The translations under genes were made by a program, and so were the position numbers. 64,000 nt of DNA from positions 124,001 to 188,000 of the forward strand of contig NIVC01001024.1 of the NCBI GenBank assembly GCA_002269645.1, given 5' to 3'. This stretch comes from Macrostomum lignano (lineage: Eukaryota). This document shows, piece by piece, positions 2,380-50,347 of the stretch (within the stretch, counting starts at the first letter, position 1; every line of letters starts with the position of its first letter). The notes below the pieces were generated by a model. That model searched no databases. It had not been told where the DNA came from and was given only the letters and a program-made list of their open reading frames with translations.

Positions 2380-3533
2380 GTTTAATGCGCATTCTAGGGT
2401 TAGAAAGTCCGAGGCTGCATTTGATGGTCTCGAGGCGAGCGAAGCGAGCCGAGGACCATTAAGTGTGACCGAGGACTTTCTACCATAGAATGCGCATTAA
2501 ACTACCGTGATCTTATATGAAATCCGAATTGCTTATTTTTGTAGCTTTCTCTTGAGCCGGGCCGAATGCGGTGCAGCCAGTCGGCAAAGACCCGATTGGG
2601 GGTGTGGGGGCGAAGCCCCCACATTGGAACCATAGACAACTTTTCCATAAATTTAAGACAGTACTAGCTAGACGAAATCCGAATTACTTTCTTTCGTAGC
2701 TTTCTCTTGAACCACACCGCGATGGAAGAAGAATTTGATAGCGACAACTTTTTTAATTTTTTCGATCTAGCCCCTGCTGGAAATGTAGTTCCGCCGCCCC
2801 TCGGAAACGCTAAAACACTGCCGACCAAACCTAGCTCTCGTTTCGGTGAGTTGCTTGATGAGACCGCTTTGGAGCGCAGAATGCTAGAGAGCTCACCTGA
2901 GTCTACACTAGCAAGAGAAAAGTGGGCGATGAATGTGTTCCAGACGTGGAAGGAGAATCGTGTCCAACTGCAAATGCAAGGCCGTCTGTCAGGACTCGCG
3001 GTGATTAAGCCTGTCAAAGAGCTTACAAAGAATGAGATCAACGAACTGTTGCACTTCTTCGTTTTTGAGGTGAGGAAGGAGAATGGCGAAAAATATCCGC
3101 CGGGAACTCTGAAAAACTTGGTATCGATGATCCAACACTTTTACGTGAGCCTGTCGCTTCTGGAGATTCCAGCGCTTCTATTACTGACCACGGTGTCAAG
3201 TCTATCATCATTGATGGAGCTAAAATCGAAATTCAGTTTAAGTGAGTTGGTGAAACGTTTAATGCATTGCCTATTATTGAAAAAACTAAATATGTTTCCT
3301 ATATAACCCTACCAATTGTCCATGGCTTGGCTAGAAAATTGTTTTTTTGTTGCTTCGTTATACAGTATATAATAACAGTTTTTTTGTTGCATCCAAGTAC
3401 ACTGTCTAGTTCTGTTTAGTCTATGGTTCAAAATGCTTTCATTTAGGGACCATCAAATCATTTGATGGTCTCCATTTTGGAGCCCATCAAATTATTTGAT
3501 GTGCCTGGAATTATAGCACTTTAAACCATAGAC
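2380..3533 (+). mobile_element. Internally deleted Crypton-like (tyrosine-recombinase class) DNA transposon remnant; ends approximate
   Basis: Contains a DUF3504/Crypton-type N-terminal ORF, a long imperfect hairpin at 2380-2502, AACCATAGAC/GTCTATGGTT motifs at 2628, 3419 and 3524, and a palindrome GACCATCAAATCATTTGATGGTC near 3448-3470. Confidence 0.6.
2722..3306 (+). pseudogene. Truncated Crypton/DUF3504 (ZMYM/KCTD1/QRICH1-related) recombinase N-terminus
   Basis: Motifs RF..L, STL.REKWAMNVFQTW, ELLHFFVFEVRKENGEKYPPGTLKNLVSMIQHF match the Crypton N-terminal core-binding region. Similarity ends after QHFY and no catalytic domain follows. Confidence 0.75.
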
Positions 3534-3606
3534 TAGGCTTTCCTGGCTCAGAATGAGCCCAATAAATGTCAATAAAATAAGTAATCGGATTTTATAAGGA
3601 TATTCA

Positions 3607-3776
3607 GTTGCCGAATAACCACAGTATGGTTATTCGGTTTCAAGTTTGAGCTATGGTTATTCTGCTTCAAGTTTGAGCTATGGTTATTCTGCTTCAAGTT
3701 TGAGCTATGGTTATTCTGCTTCAAGTTTGAGCTATGGTTATTCTGCTTCAAGTTTGAGCTATGGTTATTCGGCAAC
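3607..3776. repeat. Five 27-bp tandem units inside a 15-bp perfect inverted repeat (MITE-like)
   Basis: Unit ttcaagtttgagctatggttattctgc at 3639-3771; gttgccgaataacca (3607-3621) and tggttattcggcaac (3762-3776). Confidence 0.85.
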
Positions 3777-4100
3777 CAAAGCAGCGGGAATTTCTCCATA
3801 GACTATTCCAAGTAGCACAATTTGAGATGGATGCGTAGCATCTTTTCTTAAGAAGAATATATGTATGTATTCAACGACGCGCGATTTTCTTATATTAATA
3901 GATCCTTTAAAAATAGCATCCTCTTGATTGTCTATGTCTCTATCATCAATCTCACTGTCTTACATGGAGGAGCAGCAGCAGCAGCGGAAGCACTTTTTCT
4001 TTAACATATACCGCCCCCATCCAGCTAGTAGATATGTAACTTATTATTGATGTACTTTATTGTGCAGAAGTGCTATATAGTTGCAGCAGCTCGATCTACA

Positions 4101-6817
4101 ATGGACAACTCATGGTCCTTAGACGACGATGAGCTCAATGAGCTGCTTATTCAAGCTGCTGAAGAAGCAGATCGCGAACTTGCTGCGGCGGCGACGACCA
4201 ATGCTGCTGCCTCTGCTTCTGAGTCCGCTGGTGATGTCGCTGACATCAACGATGACGAACTAGATGCGCTGCTTATTCAGGCGGCCGAAGAAGCGGAAGC
4301 TGATGCCGCTAACGAGAACGATGAGTTGAGCCACCTGCACGATGCTGCTGCTAGGACACCATCAACGGTACCGAAGAGGCGCAGCGCGGCGTCGATCTTG
4401 TTCCGTTCACCACCACCGTCGACGCCAGTCGAGCTTGCAGAGAAACGGAAGCGGCCAACCATCCTTGTCCAAGCCTCGCGTACACCAACGCCGCCGCCAT
4501 CCGTTGCGCAGTTCGGTGACGATGACAGCGACTTCATAGTGATACCAGAGACCCAGCAGGCCGCCGCTTCATCGTCGTCGTCGTCACGCCAACCACCGCC
4601 GTCATCTTCGTCGACGCAACTGCTGCATCCGAGGCCATCGCCCAGCAGCAGCAGCAGCAGCATCATCGTCAACAACGGCGGAGGTGGCGGCGATGGGCCC
4701 GGCGCTGGGTTTATTCAGCCATCTGGCGGCGGTGCAGCAAAACCGGCATTGCTGAGACAGCCGCGCTTTGGCCCGTATGGGATCGGCCCGGCTACTGCCA
4801 GTCGCCGTTTAGCTATGCAGCCGTCTGTCGCCGTTGCTGCGCGGCTGCGCTCGCCGACAACGCCAACGCCATTCCGCGGGCTATTTGCAACCCAGAAGAC
4901 GCCGCCGACCATGCGGATGTCGGCGCCAGCATCGCCAGCGACGATGAGGATGTCAGCGTCAGCTCAAGGGCATCCGCTGCTGAAGCGCGTAGCATCGTCG
5001 TCATCTGCTTCAGCAGCTGCTCAAGTGTCGTCGCCATATTATCCAGCAGGTACGTAGGTTGGTAGCGATGTCCAGCAATTAGATTTGTGTCATAGCTTGT
5101 GACGAATTTTTTCAATATATATATATATATCGCTTTTGCATGACCCAACTCCTCACCTGCATGATCATACAGAGATGGAACGGCGATCGCTGGCTATGGG
5201 CTATGAAATGGCGGCCAGAGCAGCGGATGCTGCTGCCGATGGAGACACGGATGTAGCGCTTTTCCATGAGGTTGGCGGCAGCGGCGGCTGTGACCAAAAA
5301 TTTCAAGCACCGCACCCGTGTAATACGACTGCGTCGTCAAAGAGCACCTGTACCACCTCGCGCCTTCTGTCACCGTTTGTGCCGTTGCATCCAGACGAGA
5401 TGGTGCCAAACGACGTATATCTGGTGGCCAATAACAGCAGACGCAGTCAGCGAGCAATGTCGGTGGTACACCTGCTCTACGTGCGCAACGCGCCACAGAT
5501 GAAGCTTATGCTCAACAGCGCCTGGAGCGGAGATTTCGCGACCCAGTTGGCCATTGGTGAGTGATTAATATGTTTGTTTCTACATGCAGCTATATGTACC
5601 GATTGCTTGACTCTTAAACTAATATTTATATACTTGATCCTGTAACTTAAATTTTGTAATAATCACACAGCCGCCATAACTACGAAACAACAACAACAAC
5701 TACAATAATAATGCAATATGAAGGCCTGGCAGATAACGAATTTGCGCTGACCCCCATCCACATGGCCGATCCGTATGCCCCGACGCCCATTTGCCCAATA
5801 GGGGGTACACGATCGATACTCATATTCATGCGGACAAATGTGCTACATTGCACTGTCGAGCTGATCGACCGGCTGCGAACAATGTTCTCCTCGGGATCCA
5901 GCGCCGATACGTTTGCCGTACACGGTTGGACCCGCGCCGAGATTCGCAGCGTTCGCTCGCCGACTGCTGAAATTCGGCGTGTGACGATGCACGATCCGAC
6001 AGCTGCCGTGACCAACATTGATGACGACAGCCTGTCGCGCATCGTCTTGCTTTATCGCTGGGCAATGTCCTACCCATTAGGGACAATGCAGCCTCGCCCA
6101 GATGATCCGCATCTCGTCTGTGGGAATCCGTTGTTGCTCAAGCAGAATCTCGAATACTTTGCCAGCGTTCAAATGCTGAGACGAATTCGCGCCGAGGAGC
6201 ACGGTGTGAGTTCCGTTCCCAACTGGCTTGTCCGGCCGAGCATATGCGGCGTCTGTCAGATGCTGCCTGTCCAGTGTCTGCAGTCGTCGTCGTCGGCGGC
6301 GGCGGCGGCGGCTTCGGTAGGCAATGTGCGGAGCAACTTGGGCACGCACCGCACCGCGTTGGGTGGCAAGTGCGCCATTCAGAGGAAAATATGCGCCGCA
6401 ATGCGTCAGGCGACAGTCGGTCCGCCGTCCATTATTTACATCTGGGGTCCGAGTGGAGTCGGGAAGTCGGCGATGGTTAGTCTCCATTTCGGCCGGGAGA
6501 CCGTCTTCACTCCAAGCCTCGTCGAGACTTTTATCTACGACGGTCTGCGAGTCGGGCTGCACACCTGTCTGTTTTTTGATGAACTGACTGCAGTGCACGC
6601 CGGCGCGCAGCAGTTGCTGCTTCTTCTCAATCGGGATAAATTCATTATCAACGCCAAGCACAAGGCGCACGTCCTGACCGAGTGGACAGGCCCAATCATT
6701 TTGGCCGGGCATGTTTCTCCGGTAGATTTGCCAATTGATTTCGTCCGCCGCGTCAACTCGGGCGGTCGAAGCATTCATGTGCAGCACAACATTTTCGAGT
6801 GCAGCGGCTGCGATTAG
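4101..6817 (+). CDS. Spliced Rep-like protein with C-terminal superfamily 3 (AAA+) helicase, about 805-827 aa
   Basis: Exons 4101-5049, 5173-5556/5560, 5671/5733-6817. Intron 1 (5050-5172, AG|GTACGT...CATACAG) joins in frame. Walker A GPSGVGKS (6446-6469), Walker B CLFFDE, B-prime INAKHK, motif C PIILAGH, Arg finger FVRRV. Confidence 0.75.
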
Positions 6818-7828
6818 CTAATTGATTGATTAATCGATTCCCACCTCCTCCCTCCACTGATTGACACTTTAAGCGCGAAACTCCTACCACTTCAAATGCA
6901 CTAACTAACCACATCGTACGGTGCCCATCGCAGCACGACTCAACCCCCATTCTACGAGTACCTCCTAACTATAAGAATACCAGCAAAGTTTCGCGCAGCA
7001 AAATAAAAAAAATTACCGATCCCCCTTCTCCTCCTGGTGTGCGGACTAGTGGTAATTCTAGCCGGCCTGTCCACATGCATTGTAGTAGTTGTTGTAGTTG
7101 TTGTTTACAGGCTCTCCATGGTCGATGATAGAGCGGTGCATGCAGTCTAGATAGCTAGCACACGGGTAAAAATGCGTCGAGATTCTGCAGGTGCGGGCAG
7201 AACTTGTTTCTAACGCCTTTGTTTGATCTTGTTGCAGCAACGGCTAAATCAATTGGTTGATTCTGTTGATATTGTTGCTACGGCTGCTGCTGCTGTTGCT
7301 GCTAATTTGTTAGCCATATAGTTCAAGTCGTAAAACTATGCACTATATTCTTAAAGGAAATAGTGCTTGGCACAGTACCCAAATGGTGCGACTTGAGTAG
7401 CTAGCTAGCTAAGCTAACTAACACTATCTAACTTAGCCTTTGTTGTAAATTGGCATAAAAATATTTGAAATTCCAACTTTCAGTAGCACTTTTTCGCTAC
7501 GGTGCCTAGCAATATTTCCTTAAGATGTAGCTATACTAACAAAAATGCTGCATGAGAATTATGGGAATACGCGGAGAGCTAACTAGCGGAGGCAGTTCAG
7601 CTGCAGTTTCACGTTCGCTCGTAATGTTGTTTAGCAATTTATTTTGTTGTTGTTGTTCTTGCATTCGGTTACTGCGGTCTCTGATGTGCGTTTTTTATCT
7701 AGGTTTTTTTACTCTAAATTAGAAGCTATAATTCTCCATGTACTAAAATTTAATACAATAGCTAAGCTCCCCATATGTTTTTGTGACGAAATTTGTTAAC
7801 ACAGACAGATAGCGGATAGGCGCCTATA

Positions 7829-7859
<31 letters not shown>

Positions 7860-7959
7860 CAAGCTATTTGAAATCAATCAAATTTACCGTATATTTCTAT
7901 GGGAAATCAAGCCTTAGCACATCATAGCTTAGCAATGTGCTGCTAATAAATAATATGCT

Positions 7960-8001
7960 TAAGAAATTGTGCTTGGCACTCGTGCCAAGCACAATTTCTT
8001 A
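7960..8001. other. Perfect palindrome with 20-bp arms (putative recombinase-binding or origin site)
   Basis: taagaaattgtgcttggcac-tc-gtgccaagcacaatttctta. Confidence 0.85.
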
Positions 8002-8102
8002 TGTAATAACTTAAATAGGCTCACGCTTACAGCATTGCAGTGCTAGCTTACTTGTCGGCCGCCATTTTTCTACTTTGGCGCGTTGGTGTTTTCTTATAAA
8101 TC

Positions 8103-8283
8103 TGTTTTTGTTGCCACTGGTCGGGTGATATCGATGTTTGCTTTTTAAGGCGTAGTTGTGCTTTGATGTCAGGATGGGGCTAAATTCGTGTTCTCTTATA
8201 CATTTGTTTTTGTTGCCAATGGTCGGGTGATATCGATGCTTGCTTTTTAAGGCGTAGTTGTGCTTTAATGTCAAGATGGGGCT
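8103..8283. repeat. Two ~79-bp direct copies at 102-bp period in the element intergenic region
   Basis: tgtttttgttgcca...gatggggct at 8103-8181 and 8205-8283, with few mismatches. Confidence 0.85.
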
Positions 8284-8842
8284 CTTTTTATAAACCTTTC
8301 AATCGATCACCTACTACTCCAACTTTTTGAACTAAAGCCCATTAACTAAATTTCCCCTAATCTACAATATTTATCATATATTTTGGCATCGTTTTTTGCC
8401 TGCATACTGGCTACTATTTAATTCATTGATTGCAGCCAATATACCATCTTTTTGCTTCTTATACCATCTTACAGGCGTGGCTTGTGTTTTCCCTGTCATT
8501 TTGTCGCTTAGATGTACTTGCAGGCTAGAGAGATTTAAGACAATATCGATCTGGGCAGGGGAGGGGGAGTTAACAGCTAGCATTCTTCGTATAATACGGT
8601 GGCTTCTTTTAGTCTATGGCCTCAACTCCTTACTATGAAGAAGTGCTTCCCCTTTTATCGATTACCAAATTCAACAGTAGAGTCTCTGTTATTTGCTATA
8701 GTCTATGGCCTTAACTCTAAACTGTCTGCAGTGCTTCCCCTTTTATTGGAGAACAAGTTAACAGCAGCAGCTCGTATCCAAATGAATAGGCAGTGCAATT
8801 TCAAGACTTTGTGATCTTCTGGAATTAACAATTTCCTTCAAC

Positions 8843-8899
8843 ATGCTTTTTGGCAGTTTTCTTCACATGCTACTGGGTGGAGACGATCAGTCACAACAA

Positions 8900-8935
<36 letters not shown>

Positions 8936-11815
8936 CAACAGCAACACCCGGCTGAATCGTCTGTAGTAAGCGCTGTCGCAACTTCATCGACCACTGCAAT
9001 GCTGTCTGCTCAGTCAACGAGTGCAGAAAGTAAGTGCTCAGACATGTTCACTTTTTGTGTGTCTCGGATTATTAGTATTTATTGACAATTATCTGAAACC
9101 TGGTTTTCCTGACATGCAATGACAGGCGAACGCAGTCAGCACGAGCAGCAGCAGCAACAGCAGCGAAAGAAGCAGCAACGCAGCAAAAAAGTGTGCCCTA
9201 TACCCGGCTGTTCTGCTTTTATGCGGTTAGATGCGCTAAAGGTACATTTTTTCAGCAAGCACAAAGACTGCTGCGCTGCAGAGGAACCTACCGCGGCAGA
9301 CGGTCTGCACGCATCAGTTAATTGGTCAAAACTGGAGGACCGGCACAGAACCGAGTGGTGGTGGAGGCGCCACAGTCTTGCTGAGCCTGTGCGCGAGCAA
9401 ACGCATCCCCGCTTTGACCACTTCTGCGCAGACTGCGACGCCTTCTATCGCGATGTCGCCTACCACAACAAGCTGCATGCGGCCGAAGCTGCTGCGGACG
9501 ACGGCAACGGTGGAAGTGTTGCCCGAACCACCAAACGGCGTCGGCAGCATCAGCATCAGCCTGCGGTGGTTGCGGCGGCTACGGTCGAAGCGGAGGCGGC
9601 TACGGTCGAAGCGGAGGCGGCTATGGTCGAAGCGGAGGCGGCTACAATCGAAGCGGCGGAGGTTACGGTCGAAGCGGCAGAAATTTGTAAGCCTAAGCAG
9701 CATCAGCAAAATGCCGCAGTAGACAAACTGGACGCCGCGGTTTACGGCAAGGCGGCGGCCAAACAGCTAGCCTATATTGAAGATATGTTCTTCGACGAGG
9801 AGACCGGTATTCGCGACCGGCAGGACGCTGGTTTCCGAAAGGAATGGCAGTTGACGTACAACATGGCGATGACGGCGTTCGCCAGAATGAACCCAAGCGC
9901 CGGCTTTCGCGACGTCGCATTCTGCTTGACGGATCCCAGGCAGGCTGCCAGAGAGGTTCGGTCCTCGTCAGAAAGCTTAGGAACGGCGCGCAACCGGGCT
10001 GAGGCAATCGTCAAGTGCGTCAAATATATCATCGAGTTTATCGACAACGACCCGGTGCGACGCGCAGCAGTCATGTGTAGCTTCGGATTTAATCAGCAGC
10101 TGCAGTCCAATGAGTTCCTTGAGCGACTCGAGCTGCTTAAAAAGTCAATGCAGAGTGTCTGACGCAAGCACGATTTTGTCTACAAGTTGAACACGCCGCA
10201 AATTAACGCACGCAAACGGGCCACACAGATTACTCCTCGAGACTGGCAGCTCATCTTGGCCGACTACGCAGATCTGATTGACAACAATCAGCCGGCTGAA
10301 TGGGCGGCGGCGCGCCACAAACTGGCTGATGAGATCGCTGCAGCGGCGGCCGCGACAGTCTCCAATTGCTTTCGTAATCCCGATGATGCTCGCCGCCTTC
10401 TCGGAGATGGAGATGGCACTGAAGATCGCGACGACGAAAACAGCTGCGACAACGCCGCCGATGATGCTGACGTTGAATGCGAAGACGACTCTGATTACGA
10501 TGGCGACATTGATGGCGTCTGCGGCGGCGGCACTGATGATGAAGAAGAGAACGACGGCAGTGGCAGCGGAACAAGCATCCGGTCGGAATGCAGCATGCGA
10601 AATCGGCTGATACTGCATGCGGTGGTGCAGCATCCCCAGCGTGTTGCCCCGTGGATCGGGCTTCGCGTCGAGTACATTCTGCCCGGGAGCATTTATCGAG
10701 TCGACGACACCGACTCTGGGTTCACAACGATCTGCCTGCCCGGAAAGTATGTGCCGCACAAGCGCCGCAACGGCATTGGTTGCAGCACGCTGGCAATCGC
10801 CACTCCATTTGTGGACGCTCTGCTTGGCTGGTGGTGCAACGGCTGGCTGTCGGAGCGACAGAATTCGCTGTCTAGTGAGGCGACGACCCTGCCAATTCAA
10901 CGGCATGTCTTTTCAGTGCGCCACCGCAGTATTATCGCCACTGATGCAGTCGCCGCCGCCGCCGCCGCCGACGCCGCTACAGCCGATGCCGTTGACGCCA
11001 GATGCAAGCAGATGTCGGTCAGCAGTTTCGGCCATGCCGTGCGCTATTTCGCCTACCGATTGCTCGGCCGGCGTGGGATAGGACCAACCAAGTTTCGCAG
11101 CAGCAAGCAGGACATTGTGGTGCGCAAACACCCCGAGCTGACTGCCGACCTTGCACGCCTGATGGAGACGTCCGGCCAGATGGTGCGCCAGTTTTATACC
11201 AATGCTGCCCAGCTGCATGCCAAGGCCTCTTTGCAGGCCAAAGTGTTCGCGCTAGTGGCAGCTGAAGCTGCCACTTCGGGTCCTACGGGCGCAAGCAGCA
11301 GCAGTATTGTTGTCGTCAGTGATCCTGCCGCTGCTGGCGTCGATTTGCCACCCGGTATGTCGTCGCCGTCGTCGTCTCTGTCTTCGGCGTCGAGTCAATT
11401 GCGCAAGCGGCGTCAAAAGCGTCCTTCGCAGGAGCCAGCATCAGGAGATGATAGTAGTAAGCCGCCGACTGCAAAGCGAGCAAGGGCCGCCACCGCTACG
11501 ATGACCACCGCCGCCGCATCTCAGTCGTCAGCCAAGGCCACCACCGTCGCAGCCATTCATCAGCAACGGCCGCCTGCATCATCAGCCACTGCTGCTGCTG
11601 CTCTCCCGGTGGATGCCGATGACAGTGCCGATCCGGCTAGGTTGGCTGCGGCCGCGGCGGTCGTCGACAGCAGCAGCAGCAGCAGCAGCCAGCGACGTGC
11701 CTCGGCTACGGCTGCTCTAGCTGCTATTCGATCGGCCGTATCGTCGATTCTCAGCGTTGGTCGACAGGGTCGAAGACTGCCGGCTCAGCAGAAGCAGCAG
11801 CAGCAGCGAAAGTAG
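8843..11815 (+). CDS. C2H2 zinc-finger tyrosine recombinase/integrase (958 codons) interrupted by one in-frame TGA at 10160-10162
   Basis: Exon 8843-9029 splices in frame (A|GTAAGT...GACAG) to 9126-11815. ORFs 9119-10162 and 10187-11815 are in the same frame. Fingers CPIPGC...HFFSKH and CADC...HNKLH. Catalytic-like motifs HPQR, PHK, PTKFR, LARLMETSGQMVRQFY. Confidence 0.72.
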
Positions 11816-12750
11816 CATGGTTTAATTGAACTTCAATTAAGGTCAGAGTTAAGCTGTTGCACTGGAACTTCTATGTTGAATACTGTATTTATAAGTATAG
11901 TCAGAAGAAATCGACACAGATTTGAAACAACAGCTAGATTTTGTGGTCGGAAAGTAAAAAACAATTTTAACTACTGTGCAGCTCGACCTTGCAACATAGG
12001 TTGTAGCTCGTTTTATGGACTTATCATCTAGTAGCTAGCTATTGGATAACTAGGAGACAGGTAGCTATCAACATGTGCTGATATTATTGCTTGTATATGC
12101 CCATGCTTAGCTCACTGTCCTAGTAATTAATCAGGGTACAACTGAGGCGGGTGCAATCAGATATGTAGTCAATCAATCAATCAATATATTACTAATCAAT
12201 ATTGGTCTGCATTGATGCATTATTGGTCTGCTTTCTCTCTGAAATTTTGTTCAGCATCCTTTGGTGGCAGGAATTGTTAATTAGAGGAGCTATTGAACTG
12301 TTTATTTGCTTATATCTATGAATGCTGATAAATATGCAAAAGGCTCATGCCACTTTTTAAATGATTGTTGAAATTTGCTGTTTTTTTTCATTTTTAGATT
12401 TTATTCTAATCCAGGCTTACCTTCAACGCCCCCGCATATGCTTAAGAAGTAAGTAGCACAATTCCGGAATAGTGGCTAGCACATTTTCCCTTAAATTAAT
12501 ATGCAGTCCGCATGGCCTCTATCAATCAATATGGCCTGCATAATTTTGGAAACTCCATACATAACGTCTATAATATCTATACGAAATTGTGCTAAGCGTA
12601 ACTCCGAAATTGTGCTACCTAGTTCAAAAATACTTATTGTATTAGCCATATATATGCTTGTTTAGTCCTATAGCTATATGTATATATCGGTTATTTATAG
12701 CCAATCAATCAGGATAACTATACTTGCACCACACAGCTTTAGTTAGAGCT

Positions 12751-12792
12751 GTGAAATTGTGCCTGGCACCATTGTGCCAGGCACAATTTCAC
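12751..12792. other. Perfect palindrome with 19-bp arms, homologous to 7960-8001
   Basis: gtgaaattgtgcctggcac-catt-gtgccaggcacaatttcac. Confidence 0.85.
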
Positions 12793-13060
12793 AAGTCCGC
12801 CATTTGCTATTTCTGCTGCTGCTCCCGATCCTTGTCTGTAGCTAGCTATCGTTTGCATCTTTTCATAGCAGTTCATATTTTCTCGTTCATTTGCTTCCGC
12901 TATCCAATCTGCCGTGTTTTCCTATTTGAAACAGTTTTTTTTCAGTTGTATTGTTTGATTTTTTTGACCGCCGAATATCCATACGAATATCCAGACAGGT
13001 CGGATAACCCTCCTGGCCATAGACATCAATTGAAATCATCTGTTTTCGCTTTGAATATCC

Positions 13061-13772: not shown

Positions 13773-16700
13773 CAATATTTTGATATGAGCTCCCAAAATT
13801 TATTTTTCATTTAGCAATAAATAACTAGCATTTAAATCTCAAAAGATGCCGATGGACAGCTTCCCCTACTTGAGCAGCATGGAGCTGGCGAATCAAGTCG
13901 TAGAATTTCTGCTCTTCAACGAAAAAAACTTGTTGTTCAAGATAGCGCAGACTCTTGATAGAGGATCGCTTTTGTTAAAGTGCATTAGAGTCGCTTCTGA
14001 ACACGTTGAAGCCAACCTTTTGAGACACGGTACAAAGTCTATCAGCTCGCTAAGCTCCCCAAGTGTTGGCGCGCTTGTACATTTTTTTGTACATCCTTTT
14101 AGTGCCGATTGTTTTGACGATCTTGCCGAAGGTGCTGCGCCAAGGTGCCCGCAGCCCTCCCCGCCGAGCACACGGTGAATGCACTTTTCTATCCGAAACC
14201 CAGCCAGAAACATATGAGGGTCAACCGGCGATACGGGGCTCAAGTACATGCCAGGAAGAGTTGGACAAGTTGACAATCGTGACTGCATGCTGCTGAAGTT
14301 ATGTAGAGAAGCTTCAGGTTGCTGTTGCAGTACTGAAAATCTCTGATAGGCTAATCCGATTCTAGCTGCACTTTAGTGGAAATTGCTGATCTGCCTCCTT
14401 GGCCGCTTTTAAAGCTTTCAGATCCCCACAAAATTGGATGGTCTCAAAGATTCTATAACTTGGCTGTTGCGCTTGGCGAGTGTAGCTATGAGTTCACCAT
14501 GACACCACACCAGCTTCCGTCGGAGCTCGGAAGGAGTTACCTTAATCAGGTGCAAGTAGGGCTCAAGCATGCTTCAGTGGTTTTCCGGTAATTTTCAAAA
14601 CTAGGAATATTGTCTCGACTCTTCCAAGTTTGTCAAGTCCATGTAATTAAATGTGGCGAGACAGCCTATCCCGAATTTTCTGCTTTTTTGCTATCAAAAG
14701 CACTGAATAATTTTGTTATGATGCATCTTAGTTTCGGTGCTTTGGTCCGCCAGCATATACAAGTCTGATACTTGTATTTTAAAGCCAGCTAGCTGATCGG
14801 CTTGCAAGCTGCAGGTGGATTTTCTTATAGATTTTGTTCAGACCTCGAGTTTTAAATCGTCTCTCGGATTCGAAAACCGAAATAAAATCACTGAAAATTA
14901 TAGTTGCCAGCTATCGTGTGAGCTTGCGTTTTTGAATTTTTTGTTTGAATTAGTCAAGAGCTATTAGCTCCACAGCCGGACCCTGTGACGCTACTATGAT
15001 TACCTATGCATTATTAAATCTGTAATTCGAAAACATTATCTTTAGCATATTTTTCTACGGGACTAAACGATATACCAGATAATATAGTACTAGTTAAAAA
15101 ATTACTAACTTTTGATGCTCTCTTTTGCTCTACTTCTCTCGTCAAAGCTTCAACAACCTGCACTTGTATTAGCATCCTCAGCTAAACAAAATCTACCCAG
15201 TTTTCCGGCTTCGATCCTCCCTCTCTCTGCTCCGTTCTCAGAGCTGAACTCAATTCCCAACGCCTACGCGAACTCCCCGTTTTAGTCCAGGACCTGTCTA
15301 ATTCCTACTTCTCCCTTAACGAACCCAAGAGAGCAACAGATTGAAAGCCGTTGCCGAACGAAGTCGCTCCTCTCTCTGGGTGTCTGAGAGCCGTCGTCAA
15401 GACCTCGCGCGGCCTCCACAGCCGAGCAAATCAATAAACCGTTGTCACCCCACAGCTCGTTGCAGCCGATCAATCACAGGCGGCAACAGGCTGCACTAAA
15501 AGAAGAAGAAAAAACACACTTCTTTCTCTCTTTGCTGTTCTTCGCGAAGTTTCTTGCACCTCGTATCGCGATACGCGAGTTCATCCGCGCGATAAAATTC
15601 TCGCGTGTTCGTTGCCGCAGTTCCTCAGTTCAATACGAAACCTGATTGATTCTTTGAGAAAGGAGGTGAACCATCTCATCAGTCACAGGTTTAGGTGTGT
15701 TAGCAGAATATTTATATGGTTTTGTGATATTTTAGAATCCCCGGGGCATCGCTCCAGAAATTTTGTTACATTCATGCCCTTTTCTCTTTGCTAGATCCTG
15801 CAGAGCTCCTCAGATTCTCAGAACCCGGACGTACGCATCATAATTCAAACAGTGAAGAGTTTGGATCTTCTAACATTTCGTTTGCTGTGGCAGTCGGTAA
15901 ACATTCAGTGGTTTGCCTGATTGTAACCGGAACAGGCTTGCTCGGTCGTAACAACGCTTTAGCCAGAAACTTAACAGCTAAGAGCTTCTCTTTGCCTTAC
16001 TTTCAATGCAAATTTTAACGCAGCATTGATCCCAACGCCAAGTCCTCCGAAGCCCTCAGGGAAGAGTAGCCTGTGTTTCCCTTCTCCGTCCTTCCCATGT
16101 GAGCTGTCTCCTATTCCCTATTGAATTTATTCAACTGATCTCATTCGACTCACTGCACCGCCTTCAGCTCTTCCACTTCTCCCGTCTCCCTTAAATTTCT
16201 TGATCTGCCAAAAAAGGTCAGTCAACGGAACCTGGAGATCTCTTACTGCTCAGTTTAGTTCGAAGAGAACACCCTCGAGCAGCTTGGCTCTGTGAATTGA
16301 TGAGCTGCGCATTACCCTACACAGGACCGGGAATGCAGTGCTCCAGCCCCAGAGACAGGCAAACTCATCGCCTTCTGATGCTTGCACTCCTCAGAGCACA
16401 AGAGGCCTCCCTGAACAGACCCAAACAGTTTCGCGCTGAATGAAGTGGCGAATGGCATTTTCTCCAATGCCAGTTTGAAGTGCTCAAGCGGCCTGGCCCG
16501 CGACTTTTGCAGACCTTCCCCCCGCTATCTGAGCAGCCCTAAACTCGGGAGCCCTCCCCCATTTTTATCTGTCAGTTCGAGTTCGAGTCATCAATCAGAG
16601 GGTGACGAAGTGGCGCGGGTCTGTGGGGGGCTGGCAGTCTTCGTTGGCTCCTGCACTATAGCCACTATACTCTCATATCTCATAGACGGATCTCAATTTA

Positions 16701-17614
16701 TGTGAGGTGCGCTGTCTGCAGCTCTGACCCCTCTGCCCCACTCCTGCAGTGCCTATCTTGCCTATCTCCTCAAATATTTGGCAGAAAGGGTTAAGACAAT
16801 TTGGACTTAGATGCCCAGATACTTCTTTTTTCGTGGACTTTTGCAGTATAGAATTTTCCGTTTGACTTACATTTTTATAAAATCCATTCAACTTGGGAAA
16901 AGGATTATCGGATGGCATATTTTATCAGAATCTGCTTTTCGATACTTTTTGCCCAATTCTTTTGATGTCATTCATTCGGCGAAACAGCATTGCCCAGCCC
17001 ATTTTTGATCAGAGAAGGGGAGCTTGATGTCTCAATCAGAGGCCACTGGCGGTCAGGCCAAGCTAATCCTCTTGATAATCCTTAGCCATGACAGCGCGGG
17101 GAGTCGCTAATCCAGTCCAATTCCCTGCTGCACTTCCCTTTGCCTCTGCCCCCAAATTCTAATTCTCTTTTCGTCAACTGTGATTTCATTTTTCCTTCTG
17201 GCAGAATTCTTGCGTGATTATTTGGTAGGAAGGCTGCGGCTAGCGTTGGGTTGAAGTGGCCCTCAGTTTTTGGACAGAGAAATCGTCCTAACGCGTGTGT
17301 CAGTCCTCTAGACTGCTGTAAAACAAAATGCACGTGCGACTTTGACACTCGCTGCCGGAGACAGACCCGATTGCCGGCTGGCTGCTTTTAAATTCGCAAA
17401 GTCACGCCAGGTTAAAAACAGAACCGGCGAGAGTTTCTATATATCGATAGGCGTGGATATTCTGAGAGAGTGACGGAAGTGCGCGCATGCCGACCTGCCA
17501 TGTTCAGAGGCCTGACGGAATGATTTTTGCTCTTACGATTGCTCAGTGTACTAGACTTTTAGAGACAAGTGATGAGCTAGAGTGAGACAAAATAGATTAA
17601 GACAGACAGGACTG

Positions 17615-18250
17615 GTGGAGACACGATGGAAGTTTAGAGACAGGGCAGGTTAGAGACAGGGTGGGTTAGAGACAGGTCAGGTTAGAGACAGGGTGGATTA
17701 GAGACAGAGTGGGTTAGAGACAGAGTGGGTTAGAGACAGAGCAGGTTAGAGACAGGGTGGTTTAGAGACAGAGTGGGTTAGAGACAGAGTGGGTTAGAGA
17801 CAGAGTGGGTTAGAGACAGAGTGGGTTAGAGACAGAGTGGGTTAGAGACATAATGGGTTAGAGACAGGGCAGGTTAGAGACAGGGTGGGTTAGAGACAGG
17901 TCAGATTTGAGAGTGGGTTAGAGACATAATGGGTTAGAGACAGAGTGGGTTAGAGACATAATGGGTTAGAGACAGGGCAGGTTAGAGACAGGGTGGGTTA
18001 GAGACAGGTCAGATTAGAGAGTGGATTAGAGACATAGTGGGTTAGAGACAGGTCAGATTAGAGAGTGGGTTAGAGAAAGGGTGGGTTGAGGCTAAAGACA
18101 CGAGAAGTAGAGACAGGACAGGTAAAGACAGGAAGAAACAGGACAGATAGAGGGTAAAGACACGACAAGTAGAGACAAGGACGAGTAAAGACAAGAATGT
18201 TAGAGACATGGATGTTAAAGACAGGACAGGTAGAGAGCGAGTAAAGACAC
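17615..18250. repeat. Purine-rich minisatellite (about 16-bp gggttagagacagagt units, degenerating rightwards)
   Basis: Tandem ggttagagaca cores. Confidence 0.85.
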
Positions 18251-21066: not shown

Positions 21067-21915
21067 TCACATGACACAGCACTGGTTCCGTCGCAGCGCC
21101 TCCTGCACTCGGGCCGAGGTGGGCTTATGTCCAAAGTCCTTGTGATCGATTGCCTTCAGTAGTTCGCGGAATGCGCTGCCTACGTGCCAGTTGTACTTGG
21201 CAGAGCACTCTACAAACATACACTTCCACTGCTTGCGCACTATGTTGCTTGTCTCTCGGCGTGCCTCCTTGCCCTTGTCTTTCGACGCATCCTTGTTGCT
21301 GTTCTCTTTCTCTGATTTGCCGTTGCTAACCAGGTCGGCTTTGTTCGCTGCCACCAGTATTGGCGCGTCGATGCCCTGCTCCTGGATGCTCTCGCGAATA
21401 CGCCGGATGTAGGCAAACGAAGATTCGTCGCTGATGTCGTAGACCAGGACGTAGCCGGATGCTGAACGCAAGCCGAAGCCGCGAAAGTCGGAGAATTCTT
21501 GCAGCGAGTCGGTTGGAAAGTAGCGCAGGGTGGGACAGTCGACAATGCGAGCGTCGTAGCAGTGCTCATTGACAGTGATCGACGGGTGGTAGATTGTTGG
21601 CTTGCGAGTTGGGGTGTAGACCTCCGGGCAACTGCATTGGACGAACTGTTGCACCAGACAGGTCTTACCAACTTTGCTTGCTCCAAGGACAACAATGCGG
21701 ATGTCCTGCACCTCTGGTCCGGTCTTTTCCGCCGCGTTATGATTTGAAAAGGCGCCAGCGATTGTGCGGTCCTTGGTCTTTGAGTCTTTTGTCTGAACTG
21801 AGTGACCGTTGGAGCTGCCGCCCCCGCTGCCGCCGATGCCGCCGCTGCCGGCCAGCCCACCGGCGCTGCCGCCACCGCCAATACCGCCGCTTCCACCGCC
21901 TCCGTTTCGGAACAT
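21067..21915 (-). CDS. RASL10: Ras-like protein family member 10 (RASL10A/B-like) small GTPase, intronless
   Basis: GASKVGKT, NKAD, ECSAKYNWHV, ALRRNQCCVM CaaX end; pattern characteristic of RASL10. Confidence 0.88.
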   Translation of the reverse strand: MFRNGGGGSGGIGGGGSAGGLAGSGGIGGSGGGSSNGHSVQTKDSKTKDRTIAGAFSNHNAAEKTGPEVQDIRIVVLGASKVGKTCLVQQFVQCSCPEVYTPTRKPTIYHPSITVNEHCYDARIVDCPTLRYFPTDSLQEFSDFRGFGLRSASGYVLVYDISDESSFAYIRRIRESIQEQGIDAPILVAANKADLVSNGKSEKENSNKDASKDKGKEARRETSNIVRKQWKCMFVECSAKYNWHVGSAFRELLKAIDHKDFGHKPTSARVQEALRRNQCCVM

Positions 21916-24206: not shown

Positions 24207-25059
24207 CCACATCTTCCTTTCCAGTCTGTCGTCGAGCAGGGGGGGGGTGTTTTTCGCGCGACTTTAATCAGCTTGAATAATGAGTACCATGTGAATATTG
24301 GGATATTTGTTTATGCGCACGTATAAGCGCTAGGCTTTGTGTGATCACTAGGACAACCCTGAAGCTCTGCTCAGACTCAAATTATCAAGCAAAAGGTTCC
24401 ACAGCGTCTCGAGGGCTGGACACAGGAAGGAGTCCCAGCTGACTCAGGAAGTCGCTTAAAAGTGGGGTCCATTAAAACTCAATTGAGCATGAAATTCTTC
24501 TCCGCTTTGAGAAATCTGGGCCCTAAAGAGCAGTAAAATGAAATAAAATTGATGCAGAAAAAGAAAGATTTTTGCGTGACAAAGCGAACCAGACGATGAT
24601 GGAAGTGGGCGAGAAGGAACCTCGGATATAAAAATGAGCGAGCCTTCGGGGAGCCTCCGAGAGGCACACGATCAGACAGATAGACAGAAATTTCTATCAC
24701 AATAAATTTGCCTTCAGCATTTTGTTTTCTAGGTAAACTCAAAAGAAAAAAAATCATCAATCTGCCTTAAAAAGCAACACATGAGGTTGCGAGTTGAGAT
24801 ATTTTCGTTGTTTCACGCAGAGATCGCGGGAGAATTCTGGGTTCAAAGTAAGGGCGTGAATGAGTGCCTGATTAATTAATTTCCATTTACGCTTGGCTTA
24901 TTCTGAGTGTAAGCAGCTTCAACAGCATCCATGAGACTGGAGTCACAGTTCATAGCATGATAAAAAACGCATGAAAGTGTACTTTAAAAACCTGGCAGTT
25001 TTTTATGTTCCTAATTTATAAAATAACGATTTTTAGAGCATTCAACAATGCTAATACAA

Positions 25060-26201
<1,142 letters not shown>

Positions 26202-26604
26202 TAATGCATTATTAGGGGTTGAACACGCAGAATGGTTTCAAAGCTGAGTAACTGCTAGAAATCTGTATATTATTTCATCTTTATTGAAAAAGAATTAGTC
26301 GGATAAAAGGATAAGGGGCTTCAGATAAAGCGAGATGCGTTCACCCTCTTCCCACTTGAACGACTGTCAGCTATTGAATCTAGTTGCTACTAAATCGCAG
26401 GAATTTTATTAGAGCTGACAAAAATAATCGCATTTTATCAAGACTGCCATGGAGACTGTTGCTCTACGGTTATGCTGGCTATAATGCAGGGGTCGGCCAA
26501 CTCCAACCCGCGGCTACATGCGGCCTGCAAAGCCTCTCTATCCGTCCGGCCCTCGGGTCCTTTGAAACTTTAAAATAGTAATCCGTCTCGCTCAAAGTTT
26601 GTGT

Positions 26605-27580
26605 CTCTTCTTAGCTCTCTTCTCTCACCTTTCTCTTCTCCTCTCCTCTCCTCTCCCTTTTCCTCTCCTCTCCTCTCCCTTTTCCTCTCCTCTCCTCTCC
26701 TCTACTCTCCTCTCCTCCCCTCTCCTCTCCTCTCTTCTCCTCCCCTCTCCTCTCCTCTCCTCTCCTCTCCTCTCCTCCCCTCTCCTCTCCTCTCCTCCCC
26801 TCTCCTCTCCTCCCCTCTCCTCTCCTCCCCTCCCCTCTCCTCTCCTCTCCTCTCCTCTCCTCTCCTCTCCTCTCCTCTCCTCTCCTCCCTCTCCTCCCCT
26901 CTCCTCTCCTCTCCTCTCCTCTCCTCCCCTCCCCTCTCCTCTCCTCTCCTCTCCTCTCCTCTCCTCTCCTCTCCTCTCCTCCCTCCTCCCTCTCCTCTCC
27001 TCCCTCTCCTCTCCTCCCCTCCCCTCTCCTCTCCTCTCCTCTCCTCTCCTCTCCTCTCCTCTCCTCTCCTCCCTCTCCTCTCCTCCCCTCTCCTCTCCTC
27101 CCCTCCCCTCTCCTCTCCTCTCCTCTCCTCTCCTCTCCTCCCTCTCCTCTACTCTCCTCTCCTCCCTCTCCTCCCCTCTCCTCTCCTCCCCTCTCCTCTC
27201 CTCCCCTCCCCTCTCCTCTCCTCTCCTCTCCTCTCCTCTCCTCTCCTCTCCTCTCCTCTCCTCTCCTCCCTCTCCTCTACTCTCCTCTCCTCTACTCTCC
27301 TTTACTCTCCTCTACTCTCCTCTCCTCTACTCTCCTCTACTCTACTCTCCTCTCCTCTACTCTACTCTCCTTTACTTTCCTCTACTCTCCTCTACTCTCC
27401 TCTACTCTCCTCTCCTCTCCCTTCTACTCTTCCTTCCATCCTCTCTCCTATCATTCTCTTCTCTTCCTCCCCTCTCTCCTCTCCTATTTGATATCTCGTC
27501 ATCTCTATTCCTTTATTCCCTCGCCTCTCCTTTTTCCTATTTCTCTTATCTATTCTCTCTCCTCTCTCCCCTCCTCTGGC
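26605..27580. repeat. (CTCTC)n polypyrimidine tract
   Basis: Direct reading. Confidence 0.95.
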
Positions 27581-27670
27581 GCTCAGTCATGCGCTGGCTT
27601 CTCAATGTAGACAGAAATTCTTGTTGTAAAATTTCTTTTATAAATTAGTTTCCAGTCAAAATTTGTTCCG

Positions 27671-30600
27671 CTAGCACAAAACATGCAGCAGCGAAATCTT
27701 CACCGACCCGACATTGACGCCTGTTTTGGTGTTGCCGCCCGTGATAGCGACGCAGTCGCTGCCGTCGCAGTAGGAGCCGCCGCCGCCTCCAGCCATATAT
27801 TTGATCCGCCCGGCTCCGCCGCCGCTGTAGCCGCCGCCGCCGCCGCTGGCTCCATAGTAACCGCCGCCGCCGCCTCCACCGAAGCCGCCTTTGTAGTCGT
27901 GGCCGGACCCGGCCTCGCCGCCGACCCAGTTGTTCGCGAGGCCGCTGCCACGAGCTCCGTCGTTGGTGCTGCGCCGCGTCATGTTGGGCCTGCCCAGCCA
28001 GCCAGCTCCGGAGCCGCCGTGCTGCTCATCGAAGGGCTCGACGTTCGTTCTTGTGAATCCTGGCTGGCCGTTCGAGCCACCGAAGCCTCTGTACATCGAT
28101 TCTGGCTGGGAGTTTGTTCCGCTGGTGCCCGCCTGGCCGTCTACGCCTGCAGTTGGGAGACAGGCTTGAGATTAATGTGGACATTAATGAATAGGGCGCC
28201 GATGCCCTCAGTTCTTCAGATTTGGCGCCGATGCCCTCAGTCCTTCAGATTTGGCGCCGATGCCCTCAGTCCTTCAGATTTGGCGCCGATGCCCTCAGTC
28301 CTTCAGATTTAGCGCCGATGCCCTCAGTCCTTCAGATTTGGCGCCGATGCCCTCAGTCCTTCAGATTTGGCGCCGATGCCCTCAGTCCCTTCAGATTTGG
28401 CGCCGATGCCCTCAGTCCCTTCAGATTTGGCGCCGATGCCCTCAGTCCTTCAAATTTGGCGTGGATACCCTCAGTTCTTCAGATTTGGCGCCGATGCCCT
28501 CAGATGTCTCGTCGATGCCCTCAGTTCTTCAGATTTGGCACCGATGCCCTCAGATGTGGCGTCGATGCCCTCAGTTCTTCAGATTTGGCACCGATGCCCT
28601 CAGATGTGGCGTCGATGCCCTCAGTTCTTCAGATTTGGCACCGATGCCCTCAGATGTCTCGTCGATGCCCTCAGTTCTTCAGATTTGGCACCGATGCCCT
28701 CAGATGTGGCGCCGATGCCCTCAGTTCTTCAGATTTGGCACCGATGCCCTCAGATGTGGCGCCGATGCCCTCAGTTCTTCAGATTTGGCACTGATGCCCT
28801 CAGATGTGGCGTCGATGCCCTCAGTTCTTCAGATTTGGCACCGATGCCCTCAGATGTGGCGTCGATGCCCTCAGTTCTTCAGATTTGGCACCGATGCCCT
28901 CAGATGTGGCGCCAATGCCACAGTTCTTCAGATTTGGCACCGATGCCCTCAGATGTGGCGTCGATGCCCTCAGTTCTTCAGATTTGGCACCGATGCCCTC
29001 AGATGTGGCGTCGATGCCCTCAGTTCTTCAGATTTGGCACCGATGCCCTCAGATGTGGCGTCGATGCCCTCAGTTCTTCATATTTGGCACCGATGCCCTC
29101 AGATGTGGCGCCGATGCCCTCAGTTCTTCAGATTTGGCACCGATGCCCTCAGATGTGGCGTCGATGCCCTCAGTTCTTCAGATTTGGCACCGATGCCCTC
29201 AGATGTGGCGTCGATGCCCTCAGTTCTTCAGATTTGGCGCCCTCAGTCCCTCAGATTTGGCGCCGATACCCTCAGTCCTTCAGATTTGGCGCCGATACTC
29301 TCAGTCCTTCAGATTTGGCGCCGATACCCTCAGTCCCCGAACCAGCAGATCAAGCCTCACCAATTCCCAGTCCCTCAGGTTTAATAAGAGTTACCATCAC
29401 CGTCTTTGCCGGCTCCGCCGCCACCTCCGGCAGCCAGCAGCAGGGTGTTGTCGGCCTCCGTGTAGACGAAGCTGCCTCCGCCGCCACCTGCGCTGCCATG
29501 CAATGAATTTGGTAGTAGTGGTAGGTTGCCGCCCCTCTTCCCGACAACAACAGACAGACTCGTGCCGGCTGTCAGCCTGAAATTGCCACTCATTTTGGCG
29601 CCGTTGCCTTCACTTCGAGTGAACACCTTGCCGCCATCGGCACCCAGCGCCTCGATCCGGTAGCAGGCGGTGAACGGCAACTGTACCGTTTGAACCGAAC
29701 CAGTGCGAACGGACGTCGTAGATGAAGCTGAGAAATATTTTTTATTTAAATACATTTTAGAGTAGGTCTTAGCTATAGAGTTGGGTCATAGAGTTGGGTC
29801 ATAGGGTAGGGTCATAGACGGAATTGGGTCATATTCGGAATTGGGTCATAGACGGAATTGGGTCATATACGGAAATGGGTCATATAAGGAATAGGGTCAT
29901 TTACGGAATTATATCATATAAGGAATTGGGTCATATAAGGAATAGAGTCATATAAGGAATAGGGTCATATACAGAATTGGGTCATATAGGAAATTGGATC
30001 ATAAAAGGAATTGGGTCATATACGGAATTGGGTCATATAAGGAATTGGATCATCGACGGAATTGGGTCACATACGAAATTGGGTCATATATGGAATCGGG
30101 TCATAGATAGAATCGGGTCATATATAGAATCGAGTCATAGATAGAATCGGGTCATATATAGAATCGGGTCATAGATAGAATCGGGTCATATATTGATTCG
30201 GGTTATTGATAGAATCAGGTCATACATTGAATCGGGTCATTGATAGAATCGGGTCATTGATAGAATCGGGTCATTGATAGAATCGGGTCATTGATAGAAT
30301 CGGGTCATTGATAGAATCGGGTCATAAATAGATTCGAGTCATAGATAGAATCGGGTCATAGATAGAATCGGGTCATAAATAGAATTGGGTCATATATAGA
30401 ATCGAGTCATACAAGTAGATAGAATCGGGTCATAGATATAATCAGGTCACAGATAGAATCGGGTCAAAGATATACTCGGGTCATAGATAGAATCGAGTTA
30501 TGAATAGAATCGGGTAAGAGATAGACTCGGGTCACAGATAGAATCGGGTCAAAGATAGAATCGGGTCATAGATAGAATCGGGCATCGATAGAATCAAAAG

Positions 30601-34856: not shown

Positions 34857-50347
<15,491 letters not shown>

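Follow-up and report, generated by a model that had tools for sequence, protein, structure and literature searches.

A Rep-derived helicase gene beside a putative recombinase gene: a candidate two-gene element in the genome of Macrostomum lignano

What is the nature of a GC-rich block of about 9 kb in the genome of the flatworm Macrostomum lignano that combines a helicase gene, a zinc-finger gene and a private set of repeated and palindromic sites? The block, called the unit below, occupies positions 3810-12793 of a 64,000-nucleotide stretch of DNA (contig NIVC01001024.1 of assembly GCA_002269645.1, positions 124,001 to 188,000 of the forward strand). This whole stretch is referred to as the window, and coordinates are those of the window unless another contig is named. 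The reading developed here takes the unit for the integrated copy of a two-gene element of eukaryotic nuclei, rare and without a capsid, in which a Rep-derived helicase is joined to a putative recombinase. The case for and against this reading is evenly balanced.

The unit differs in composition from its neighbourhood, with 50-59% GC (about 57%) against 37-45%. According to the list of open reading frames (ORFs) and the domain scans, its coding content consists of only two large multi-exon genes, both GC-rich and on the + strand. This agrees with a preliminary description of the same DNA, which had proposed two large co-oriented genes and neither a capsid nor a polymerase. No capsid-like or polymerase domain was found with Pfam and PHROGs in the ORFs of the unit on either strand, and no capsid-like or other viral domain was found in the flanks; the other ORFs of 3810-12793, on either strand, match no Pfam or PHROG family. 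The products of both genes contain Ala/Ser/Gln/Pro-rich tracts, including the poly-Q/A/S runs noted earlier. With no defect in gene 1 and one stop in gene 2, the copy is judged to be young or constrained.

The helicase gene and its Rep ancestry

Gene 1, the helicase gene (4101-6817, +), has three exons (4101-5049, 5173-5556/5560 and 5671/5724-6817). Once two GT-AG introns are removed, it encodes a product of about 810-830 amino acids without a stop or a frameshift; intron 1 spans 5050-5172, and intron 2 spans 5561-5670 or 5557-5723, both of which are frame-preserving solutions. The protein ends in a superfamily 3 (SF3) helicase ATPase domain (6356-6814, +), placed by a structure model and the family alignment, with Walker A (GPSGVGKS) at 6446-6469 and Walker B (CLFFDE) at 6566-6583. 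Both motifs are kept across the alignment of the helicase family, which also conserves a B'-type Lys, an RR motif after motif C, a CxxC and a C-terminal H..xC.GC. Motif C itself reads LAGH, LANV, LAAV or FSSV at the expected place, and a sensor-1 Asn is present in one member only.

Library hidden Markov models give weak P-loop matches only (AAA_16, 2e-4; RNA_helicase PF00910, 0.07). An AlphaFold (AF2) model built from the family alignment reaches a pLDDT (predicted local distance difference test) of 85-95 over the ATPase, residues 215-368. In a Foldseek comparison of this model with the PDB, all the best matches are SF3 helicases, and papillomavirus E1 is the best (3e-7), aligned over about 270 columns that include the helical region before the ATPase. 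The top 20 matches, among them E1, B19 NS1 and adeno-associated virus (AAV) Rep, have E values from 3e-7 to 2e-5. The PDB matches comprise, besides E1, B19 NS1, AAV Rep68/Rep40, SV40 large T, PCV2 Rep and vientovirus Rep, and the best matches in BFVD are parvovirus NS1, Reps of circular Rep-encoding single-stranded DNA (CRESS) viruses, adomavirus EO1 and bidnavirus NS. Together with the conserved Walker A, Walker B, B'-type Lys and RR motif, these Foldseek matches confirm, at the level of a predicted structure, that gene 1 ends in a genuine SF3 helicase of the Rep/NS1/E1/large T class, as the preliminary description had it.

The ancestry of the protein is revealed by the segment upstream of the ATPase. 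An alignment of this region from five family members (the window, the metagenome contig L002, P0005, the M. lignano copy and P0010) was compared by hhalign with the N-termini of three Rep-like proteins. The comparison gave a probability of 88.9 with an E value of 2.4e-6 and a score of 46.4 over 78 columns, against a maximum score of 15.3 in 40 column-shuffled controls. Pairwise BLASTP of the upstream segment also connects the family to Reps (P0005-P0009, 1.9e-5; P0005-P0012, 3.6e-5; window-P0012, 1e-3). The matched HUH endonuclease-like segment lies at 5927-6178 (+) and was also inspected column by column; in the Reps it extends from motif III (..VLKYITKED..) across the linker (..W.K....DDPF..). 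Where the catalytic Tyr of motif III would stand, the five family members carry R, R, W, S and K (R in the window), and the Lys column of YxxK is likewise not conserved in the helicase family. In the HUH region one His is kept by eye, in (W/L)H(L/V/C)(Y/T)E; this stretch lies outside the significant hhalign segment and is unmodelled by AF2.

These comparisons establish on sequence evidence that the gene 1 family descends from a CRESS-type Rep and that its nuclease, without the catalytic Tyr, is inactivated. Because the dead nuclease, the acidic repeat and the C-terminal H...C.GC are common to the members, they point to one selected gene family and not to independent decay. Lacking the catalytic Tyr, the gene 1 protein is unable to initiate rolling-circle replication, and the loss points instead to an origin-binding helicase of the kind represented by E1 and large T.

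The family is very rare. A HMMER search of 1.84 billion representatives with the helicase returned 12 proteins, nine of them close relatives and three distant ones (about 1e-4), and a word-indexed search of 5.8 billion (5.8e9) clusters with the helicase ORF gave no match. One of the close relatives, P0001, is M. lignano PAA62424.1 (E 7.6e-25); the others are fragments from metagenomes and Logan assemblies. The three distant relatives are Reps with HUH motifs I-III and an SF3 helicase, as judged by Pfam and inspection (P0011 matches Viral_Rep at 2.5e-9). The metagenome contig L002 contains a full-length, intron-less homologue (6e-45) and confirms the spliced junction inferred for a second M. 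lignano locus, L001, described below. In two Logan copies (L021 and L023; 33-37% GC), the helicase domain is interrupted by other intron-sized gaps. The helicase family is thus found in a number of distinct eukaryotic genomes.

The nearest nuclease-competent relative is P0009, in which HUH motifs I, II and III are all present. It is encoded by a Logan contig of SRR17247090 (L050), which is 2144 bp long, has 36% GC and carries the complete HUH-SF3 Rep. A terminal overlap of 30 nt indicates that the contig is a small circle, and its second ORF, of at least 224 amino acids, has no Pfam match. L050 probably represents a lineage of CRESS-like viruses that has not been described and that lies nearest to the helicase family.

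The N-terminus of the gene 1 protein consists of acidic repeats and a low-complexity linker. An acidic helix motif, D-[SD]-D-D-E-L/R-..-A-L/A, occurs there in one or two copies (window 4123-4171 and 4249-4297; L001 8454-9536; L002 452-991) and is conserved in the window, M. lignano L001 and metagenome L002 copies. It resembles a ubiquitin-interacting motif by eye, with no Pfam match, and apart from this short acidic motif the N-terminal parts of the window and L001 proteins share no significant similarity. Directly 3' of the helicase stop, a stop-rich run of the GATTGATTAAT type is found both in the window (6815-6845, ATTGATTGATTAATCGAT) and on L001 (10757-10795, GATCGATCGATTGATTAATG). Its reverse complement, CAATCAATCAAT, recurs at 12170-12190, 12520 and 12700.

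The partner gene and the repeated sites

The association of the two genes was assessed on the window and on L001, the M. lignano contig NIVC01001938.1. Tblastn located both homologues side by side on this contig. The L001 helicase (8454-10759, +) has the same three-part layout as that of the window and one apparent frameshift. About 4.2 kb downstream, on the - strand, lies the homologue of gene 2 (14941-17651), whose N-terminal part is a Cys/His region and which also contains low-complexity tracts. Gene 2 and this neighbour are reciprocal best tblastn matches (E 3e-4 and 9e-4; BLASTP 2e-5). The pair on L001 is flanked by COG7, EME1 and a glycosyltransferase-like ORF, and that of the window by an ORF with a QRICH1 domain, a Ras-like GTPase and a MIP gene. 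Since the flanking genes differ, it is the gene pair that is conserved and not the neighbourhood, and the two genes therefore form a unit. The spacer between the L001 genes contains GA-rich simple repeats and, at 11201-11922, a Tc1-like miniature inverted-repeat transposable element (MITE). The MITE is flanked by TA, has terminal inverted repeats of 48 bp that match perfectly, and retains the remnant of a helix-turn-helix reading frame. The 48-bp repeats were considered as an analogue of the palindromes described below and rejected, since they form the termini of this unrelated MITE of the Tc1/mariner type.

Gene 2 (8843-11815, +) encodes a C2H2 zinc-finger protein and has one 5' GT-AG intron, 9030-9125, after which a single frame runs to 11815, free of frameshifts and broken once by an in-frame stop codon. 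In both genes, removal of GT-AG introns yields one open frame, in keeping with the spliceosomal introns proposed earlier. By sequence reading, a first C2H2 finger (CPIPGC..H..H) lies at 9194-9262 (+) and a second CxxC..HxxxH motif at 9425-9478 (+). The preliminary description had called the product a C2H2-finger tyrosine recombinase (YR); the fingers were recovered, and the recombinase assignment is unconfirmed by profile and PDB searches.

The candidate catalytic residues lie in a conserved core at 10592-11236 (+), defined by alignment with the L001 homologue, by Smith-Waterman comparison and by hhalign. The window and L001 cores reach a Smith-Waterman score of 73, against 31 +/- 5 in shuffles, none of 2000 of which scored as well; for the C-terminal half of the core alone, 28 of 2000 did. 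Residues common to both cores are the R of PWIxLR, the K of VPHK, the R of (K/D)(F/W)R, an xTS and a Y about 10 positions later. As far as two sequences can tell, these stand in the order and at the approximate spacing of the YR pentad (R-to-K 32, R-to-xTS about 22), apart from the missing His of the second box. The reference profile for hhalign was built from the annotated records of Cre, lambda Int, XerC, XerD, FimB, FimE and IntA. The best segment of the gene-2 core is colinear with the YR fold and scores 20.6, a value reached by one of 150 column shuffles. These limited sequence features make it somewhat more likely than not that the gene-2 core is a tyrosine recombinase. The single-sequence AF2 model of gene 2 has a pLDDT of 35, and its Foldseek matches are for that reason meaningless. 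A degenerate DNA pattern for VPHK..FxDALL found nine matches in metagenomes, which is the chance level, and the region 5' of the core has no significant similarity to the N-terminus of the L001 protein.

The non-coding DNA of the unit is marked by iterated sites. The 9-mer GCACAATTT occurs seven times, against 0.62 expected, at the left end, in the middle and at the right end of the unit, which bears out the earlier observation of motifs shared by both ends and the middle; the boundaries first drawn, 3812-12792, coincide with the outermost occurrences of the motif. Allowing up to three mismatches, the 17-mer GAAATTGTGCTTGGCAC likewise occurs seven times, against 0.22 expected, always within 7357-12790. 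Taken together, all matches of the 9-mer and the 17-mer fall in non-coding DNA of the unit, within 3815-12790. Half-sites of the form GAAATTGTGC number 14, in seven pairs. They are organized in modules, of which the left-end one, of 38 nt (3810-3847, -), consists of two direct half-sites of the AGCACAATTT type, contains a GCACAATTT match and is the first occurrence of the motif. Three homologous copies of this module family lie at 3810, 7481 and 12451. Downstream of the helicase gene, two 38-nt modules with two half-sites each converge (7357-7394 forward, 7481-7518 reverse), and downstream of gene 2, two modules of 38-43 nt diverge (12451-12488 reverse, 12583-12625 forward).

Two perfect palindromes complete the set. 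Palindrome 1 (7960-8001) is a perfect stem of 19 bp that encloses a short, asymmetric centre (DNA fold -21.1 kcal/mol, z -9.9). Palindrome 2 (12750-12793) has a 20-bp perfect stem (-25.3 kcal/mol, z -9.8), is the last occurrence of the motif and is the presumed right end of the unit. The two differ at one internal T/C and at outer bases, and each difference is mirrored in the partner arm, which argues that the dyad symmetry is maintained and not accidental. Simple tyrosine recombinases act on dyad-symmetric sites whose centres are short and asymmetric. Outside the unit, the remaining 55 kb of the window lack the motif, as does every relative locus compared, so that the iterated sites and palindromes are private to the unit. 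A 16-mer site searched in IMG/VR gave nothing beyond chance single matches without protein homology, and scans of the same database with the helicase, the gene-2 core and the P0001/P0002 alignment found no relative of the unit. The four bases AAGT are present at both borders; they are given little weight because the internal module at 12451 includes AAGT too. A tandem repeat 5' of gene 2 (8083-8283) consists of two copies of a 99-102-bp unit that are 92% identical.

A possible mechanism and the competing explanations

The most economical reading of the locus is an integrated, capsid-less two-gene element of CRESS-Rep ancestry that acts like an integrative plasmid. Gene 1 would be the descendant of a Rep from a small circular CRESS-like replicon that kept a functional-looking SF3 helicase and lost the nuclease Tyr. 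Its product is probably a sequence-specific, origin-binding replicative helicase that would recruit host polymerases. The core of gene 2 most likely has a YR-type active site, and would break and join DNA in place of the dead nuclease; proposed roles include integration and excision, inversion or the resolution of multimers. The half-sites and the two perfect palindromes may serve as the cis sites of one or both proteins. In this scheme we infer recombinase chemistry, the pairing of proteins with sites, a circular or replicating form and present-day activity, and a cycle of excision as a circle, replication and re-integration is offered as pure conjecture.

A number of observations weigh against such an element. 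On the protein side, Pfam, NCBIfam and PHROGs return no match at E<=10 for the gene 2 protein or its L001 homologue, which includes profiles of the Phage_integrase and DUF3504 type; PDB sequences match gene 2 neither by sequence nor by profile; and neither the 3' segment of gene 2 nor the two-sequence gene-2 alignment found a match in word-indexed protein searches. The comparison of the core with the seven bona fide recombinases has an hhalign probability of about 1% (P 0.05), and the His-II of the HxxR box is not His in either gene-2 sequence. On the DNA side, the palindrome centres measure 2-4 nt, so that a crossover region of 6-8 bp would have to take in symmetric stem bases, and L001 has no palindromes comparable to those of the window. 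The unit is present as one copy within the 64-kb window, at both the DNA and the protein level. The two genes are convergent on L001 and co-oriented in the window. An intron at I-G|GTGAGT is common to the L001 helicase and intron 2 of the window at about 39% protein identity, and introns and host-like low-complexity tracts in general are as compatible with cellular genes of long residence as with an element.

Part of this evidence is what the main rival would predict, namely that the two genes are domesticated: after losing its nuclease and acquiring introns and low-complexity regions, an ancient endogenous CRESS-like Rep would now work as an immobile cellular helicase beside a C2H2 partner. 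Spliceosomal introns, one of them at a shared position despite the low identity, further introns in the Logan copies, host-like poly-Q/A/S tracts, a single copy per locus examined and the absence of cis palindromes from L001 all agree with it. We nevertheless regard domestication as rather improbable. The helicase family is extremely sparse, with no match from well-annotated animal proteomes, and the unit stands out from its surroundings in GC content. Iterated sites and perfect palindromes are confined to it, and both orientation and flanking genes differ between the window and L001. Additionally, the stop in gene 2 and the apparent frameshift in the L001 helicase are unexpected for essential host genes.

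Two further explanations concern the nature of gene 2 and the completeness of the unit. The unit may be mobile or episomal while gene 2 encodes a zinc-finger partner other than a recombinase, such as an origin-recognition or transcription factor, with integration incidental or host-mediated. Searches for a YR fold by profile and structure were all negative or marginal, C2H2 fingers are present, and the half-sites could be mere binding sites for the gene 2 protein. This is still unlikely, as R, K, R and Y are kept in two very divergent homologues at spacings typical of tyrosine recombinases, the colinear hhalign segment exceeds 149 of 150 column shuffles, and the predicted order of two alpha helices, three beta strands and further helices, in a low-confidence model, is consistent with that fold. 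The unit could also be a fragment of a larger integrated DNA virus, that is, an endogenous viral element that has lost its structural genes or has them beyond the limits of the unit. This view draws on the structural neighbours of the helicase, all of which are viral replication proteins, and on the closest active Rep, which sits on a virus-sized circle with a second ORF. It is very unlikely in the light of the recurrence of the same two genes alone on M. lignano L001, the introns in them, the absence of capsid-like or other viral domains from unit and flanks, and the lack of a relative in IMG/VR.

The surroundings of the unit are those of an ordinary chromosome. A Ras-family small GTPase (21067-21915, -; 2.4e-24) and a two-exon MIP/aquaporin gene (58029-59746, +) are cellular genes, and their presence identifies the window as eukaryotic chromosomal DNA. 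Just upstream of the unit, an ORF at 2707-3306 (+) contains a QRICH1-type domain (PF25561, 8e-7, just under the gathering score), which also occurs in Crypton-derived genes; no catalytic domain was found downstream of this ORF or beyond the unit. A MITE-like block (3417-3806), bounded by TAGTCTATGG and CCATAGACTA, abuts the left end of the unit, and comprises a 58-nt imperfect hairpin (3417-3535) followed by six to seven copies of a 27-bp minisatellite (3598-3800). The 10-mer that bounds this block recurs inside the unit at 8610 and 8699, with 11 matches in the window against 3.7 expected. Strand composition is extreme at 25000-28000 and 35000-37000 (GC skew -0.6 and +0.8, AT skew up to 0.89), where long low-complexity ORFs give spurious extensin-, TTR-52- and folate-receptor-like matches. 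An Rfam scan of the whole window gave no match.

Relation to known elements

Among known replication proteins, the closest are Reps encoded by CRESS-DNA viruses and pCRESS plasmids, such as P0009. Such Reps combine an HUH endonuclease, an oligomerisation domain and an SF3 helicase. Their SF3 helicase is homologous to that of gene 1 by sequence (phmmer 1e-4) and by fold, and so is the segment of motif III and linker. Gene 1 differs from them by the loss of the catalytic Tyr and the YxxK Lys, by an HUH motif apparently reduced to one His, and by its introns, its long, low-complexity acidic N-terminus and its C-terminal Cys/His motif. The unit as a whole is chromosomal and 9 kb long, has a partner gene, and lacks both a capsid gene and a nonanucleotide stem-loop origin.

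Papillomavirus E1 and polyomavirus large T combine an SF3 helicase with an origin-binding domain derived from an inactivated HUH fold; their binding sites at the origin are short and stand in palindromic arrays, and they unwind double-stranded origin DNA. Gene 1 is similar in that E1 is its best PDB match, its nuclease is dead, and palindromic and iterated short sites lie near the gene. A sequence relationship to these viruses is detectable in the helicase only. Unlike them, the unit has neither a capsid gene nor early and late gene sets, and consists of spliced nuclear genes within a chromosome, one of which encodes a putative recombinase.

Cryptons are eukaryotic DNA transposons that encode a tyrosine recombinase only. 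They are a group of transposable elements (PMC10288648). If gene 2 is a tyrosine recombinase, the unit would share with them the character of a capsid-less, YR-encoding eukaryotic DNA element whose genes may contain introns. It differs from Cryptons, which lack a helicase, in its linked SF3 helicase (in the window and on L001), its palindromic sites and its iterated modules. A Crypton is ruled out by the second gene, the helicase, at two loci, and no DUF3504 or Phage_integrase match was found.

The yeast 2-micron plasmid encodes the Flp recombinase and carries two inverted repeats with FRT sites, which separate two unique halves that invert. In the unit, two related dyad-symmetric sites likewise part a helicase half of about 4.2 kb from a recombinase half of about 4.8 kb, and the relative gene orientations in the window and on L001 are what inversion isomers would produce. 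A 2-micron-like inversion, in which the palindromes split the unit into two halves whose orientation differs between the two loci, may be entertained as speculation by analogy. The plasmid has no helicase of its own and is not integrated, and L001 has no recognisable sites.

A pairing of a tyrosine recombinase with an SF3-type helicase occurs in P4-like phage satellites, archaeal integrative plasmids and Tlr1/Polinton-like viruses (PMC5499653, PMC11296320). Their genes are combined by the same logic, with a site-specific recombinase to integrate the element and an SF3 replicative helicase of its own. The helicases of those elements are of the primase-helicase (D5/P4 alpha) type, unlike the Rep-derived gene 1; capsid genes are present in Polinton-like viruses and Tlr1, all these elements live in prokaryotes or protists, and no sequence relationship of any of them to the unit was found.

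Other classes were rejected on gene content. DIRS, Ngaro and PAT elements are excluded, as no ORF of the unit contains a reverse transcriptase or RNase H. Polintons, Polinton-like viruses and Tlr1 are excluded by the presence of two genes only, without capsid, packaging ATPase, pPolB or primase-helicase domains. Helitrons, which combine a Y2 HUH Rep with an SF1B Pif1-like helicase, are excluded by the SF3 type of the helicase and the absent catalytic Tyr. Replitrons, which have an active Rep and no helicase, were likewise rejected.

Literature searches found no matching element. What is new here is the Rep ancestry of a helicase with an inactivated nuclease; integrative elements that unite a tyrosine recombinase and an SF3 helicase are already known as a kind. 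It is possible, though doubtful, that the unit represents an undescribed class of animal-borne eukaryotic DNA element, in which a Rep-derived, E1/large-T-like helicase is joined to a divergent tyrosine recombinase acting on palindromes. Such a class would be an intron-bearing nuclear integrative plasmid or 2-micron-like element, scattered in flatworms and other eukaryotes. If true, it would extend the short list of DNA-element types known from eukaryotes by a new combination of genes, and would supply a second independent case, after the papillomavirus/polyomavirus lineage, of a Rep whose nuclease was inactivated while the SF3 helicase was kept. It would also tie the replication proteins of single-stranded DNA viruses to an integrated, intron-bearing animal element, and so bear on the interconversion of viruses, plasmids and transposons. 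Even if the locus were a domesticated pair, it would contain a rare, conserved family of Rep-derived helicases with a fixed partner gene, unnamed in any library.

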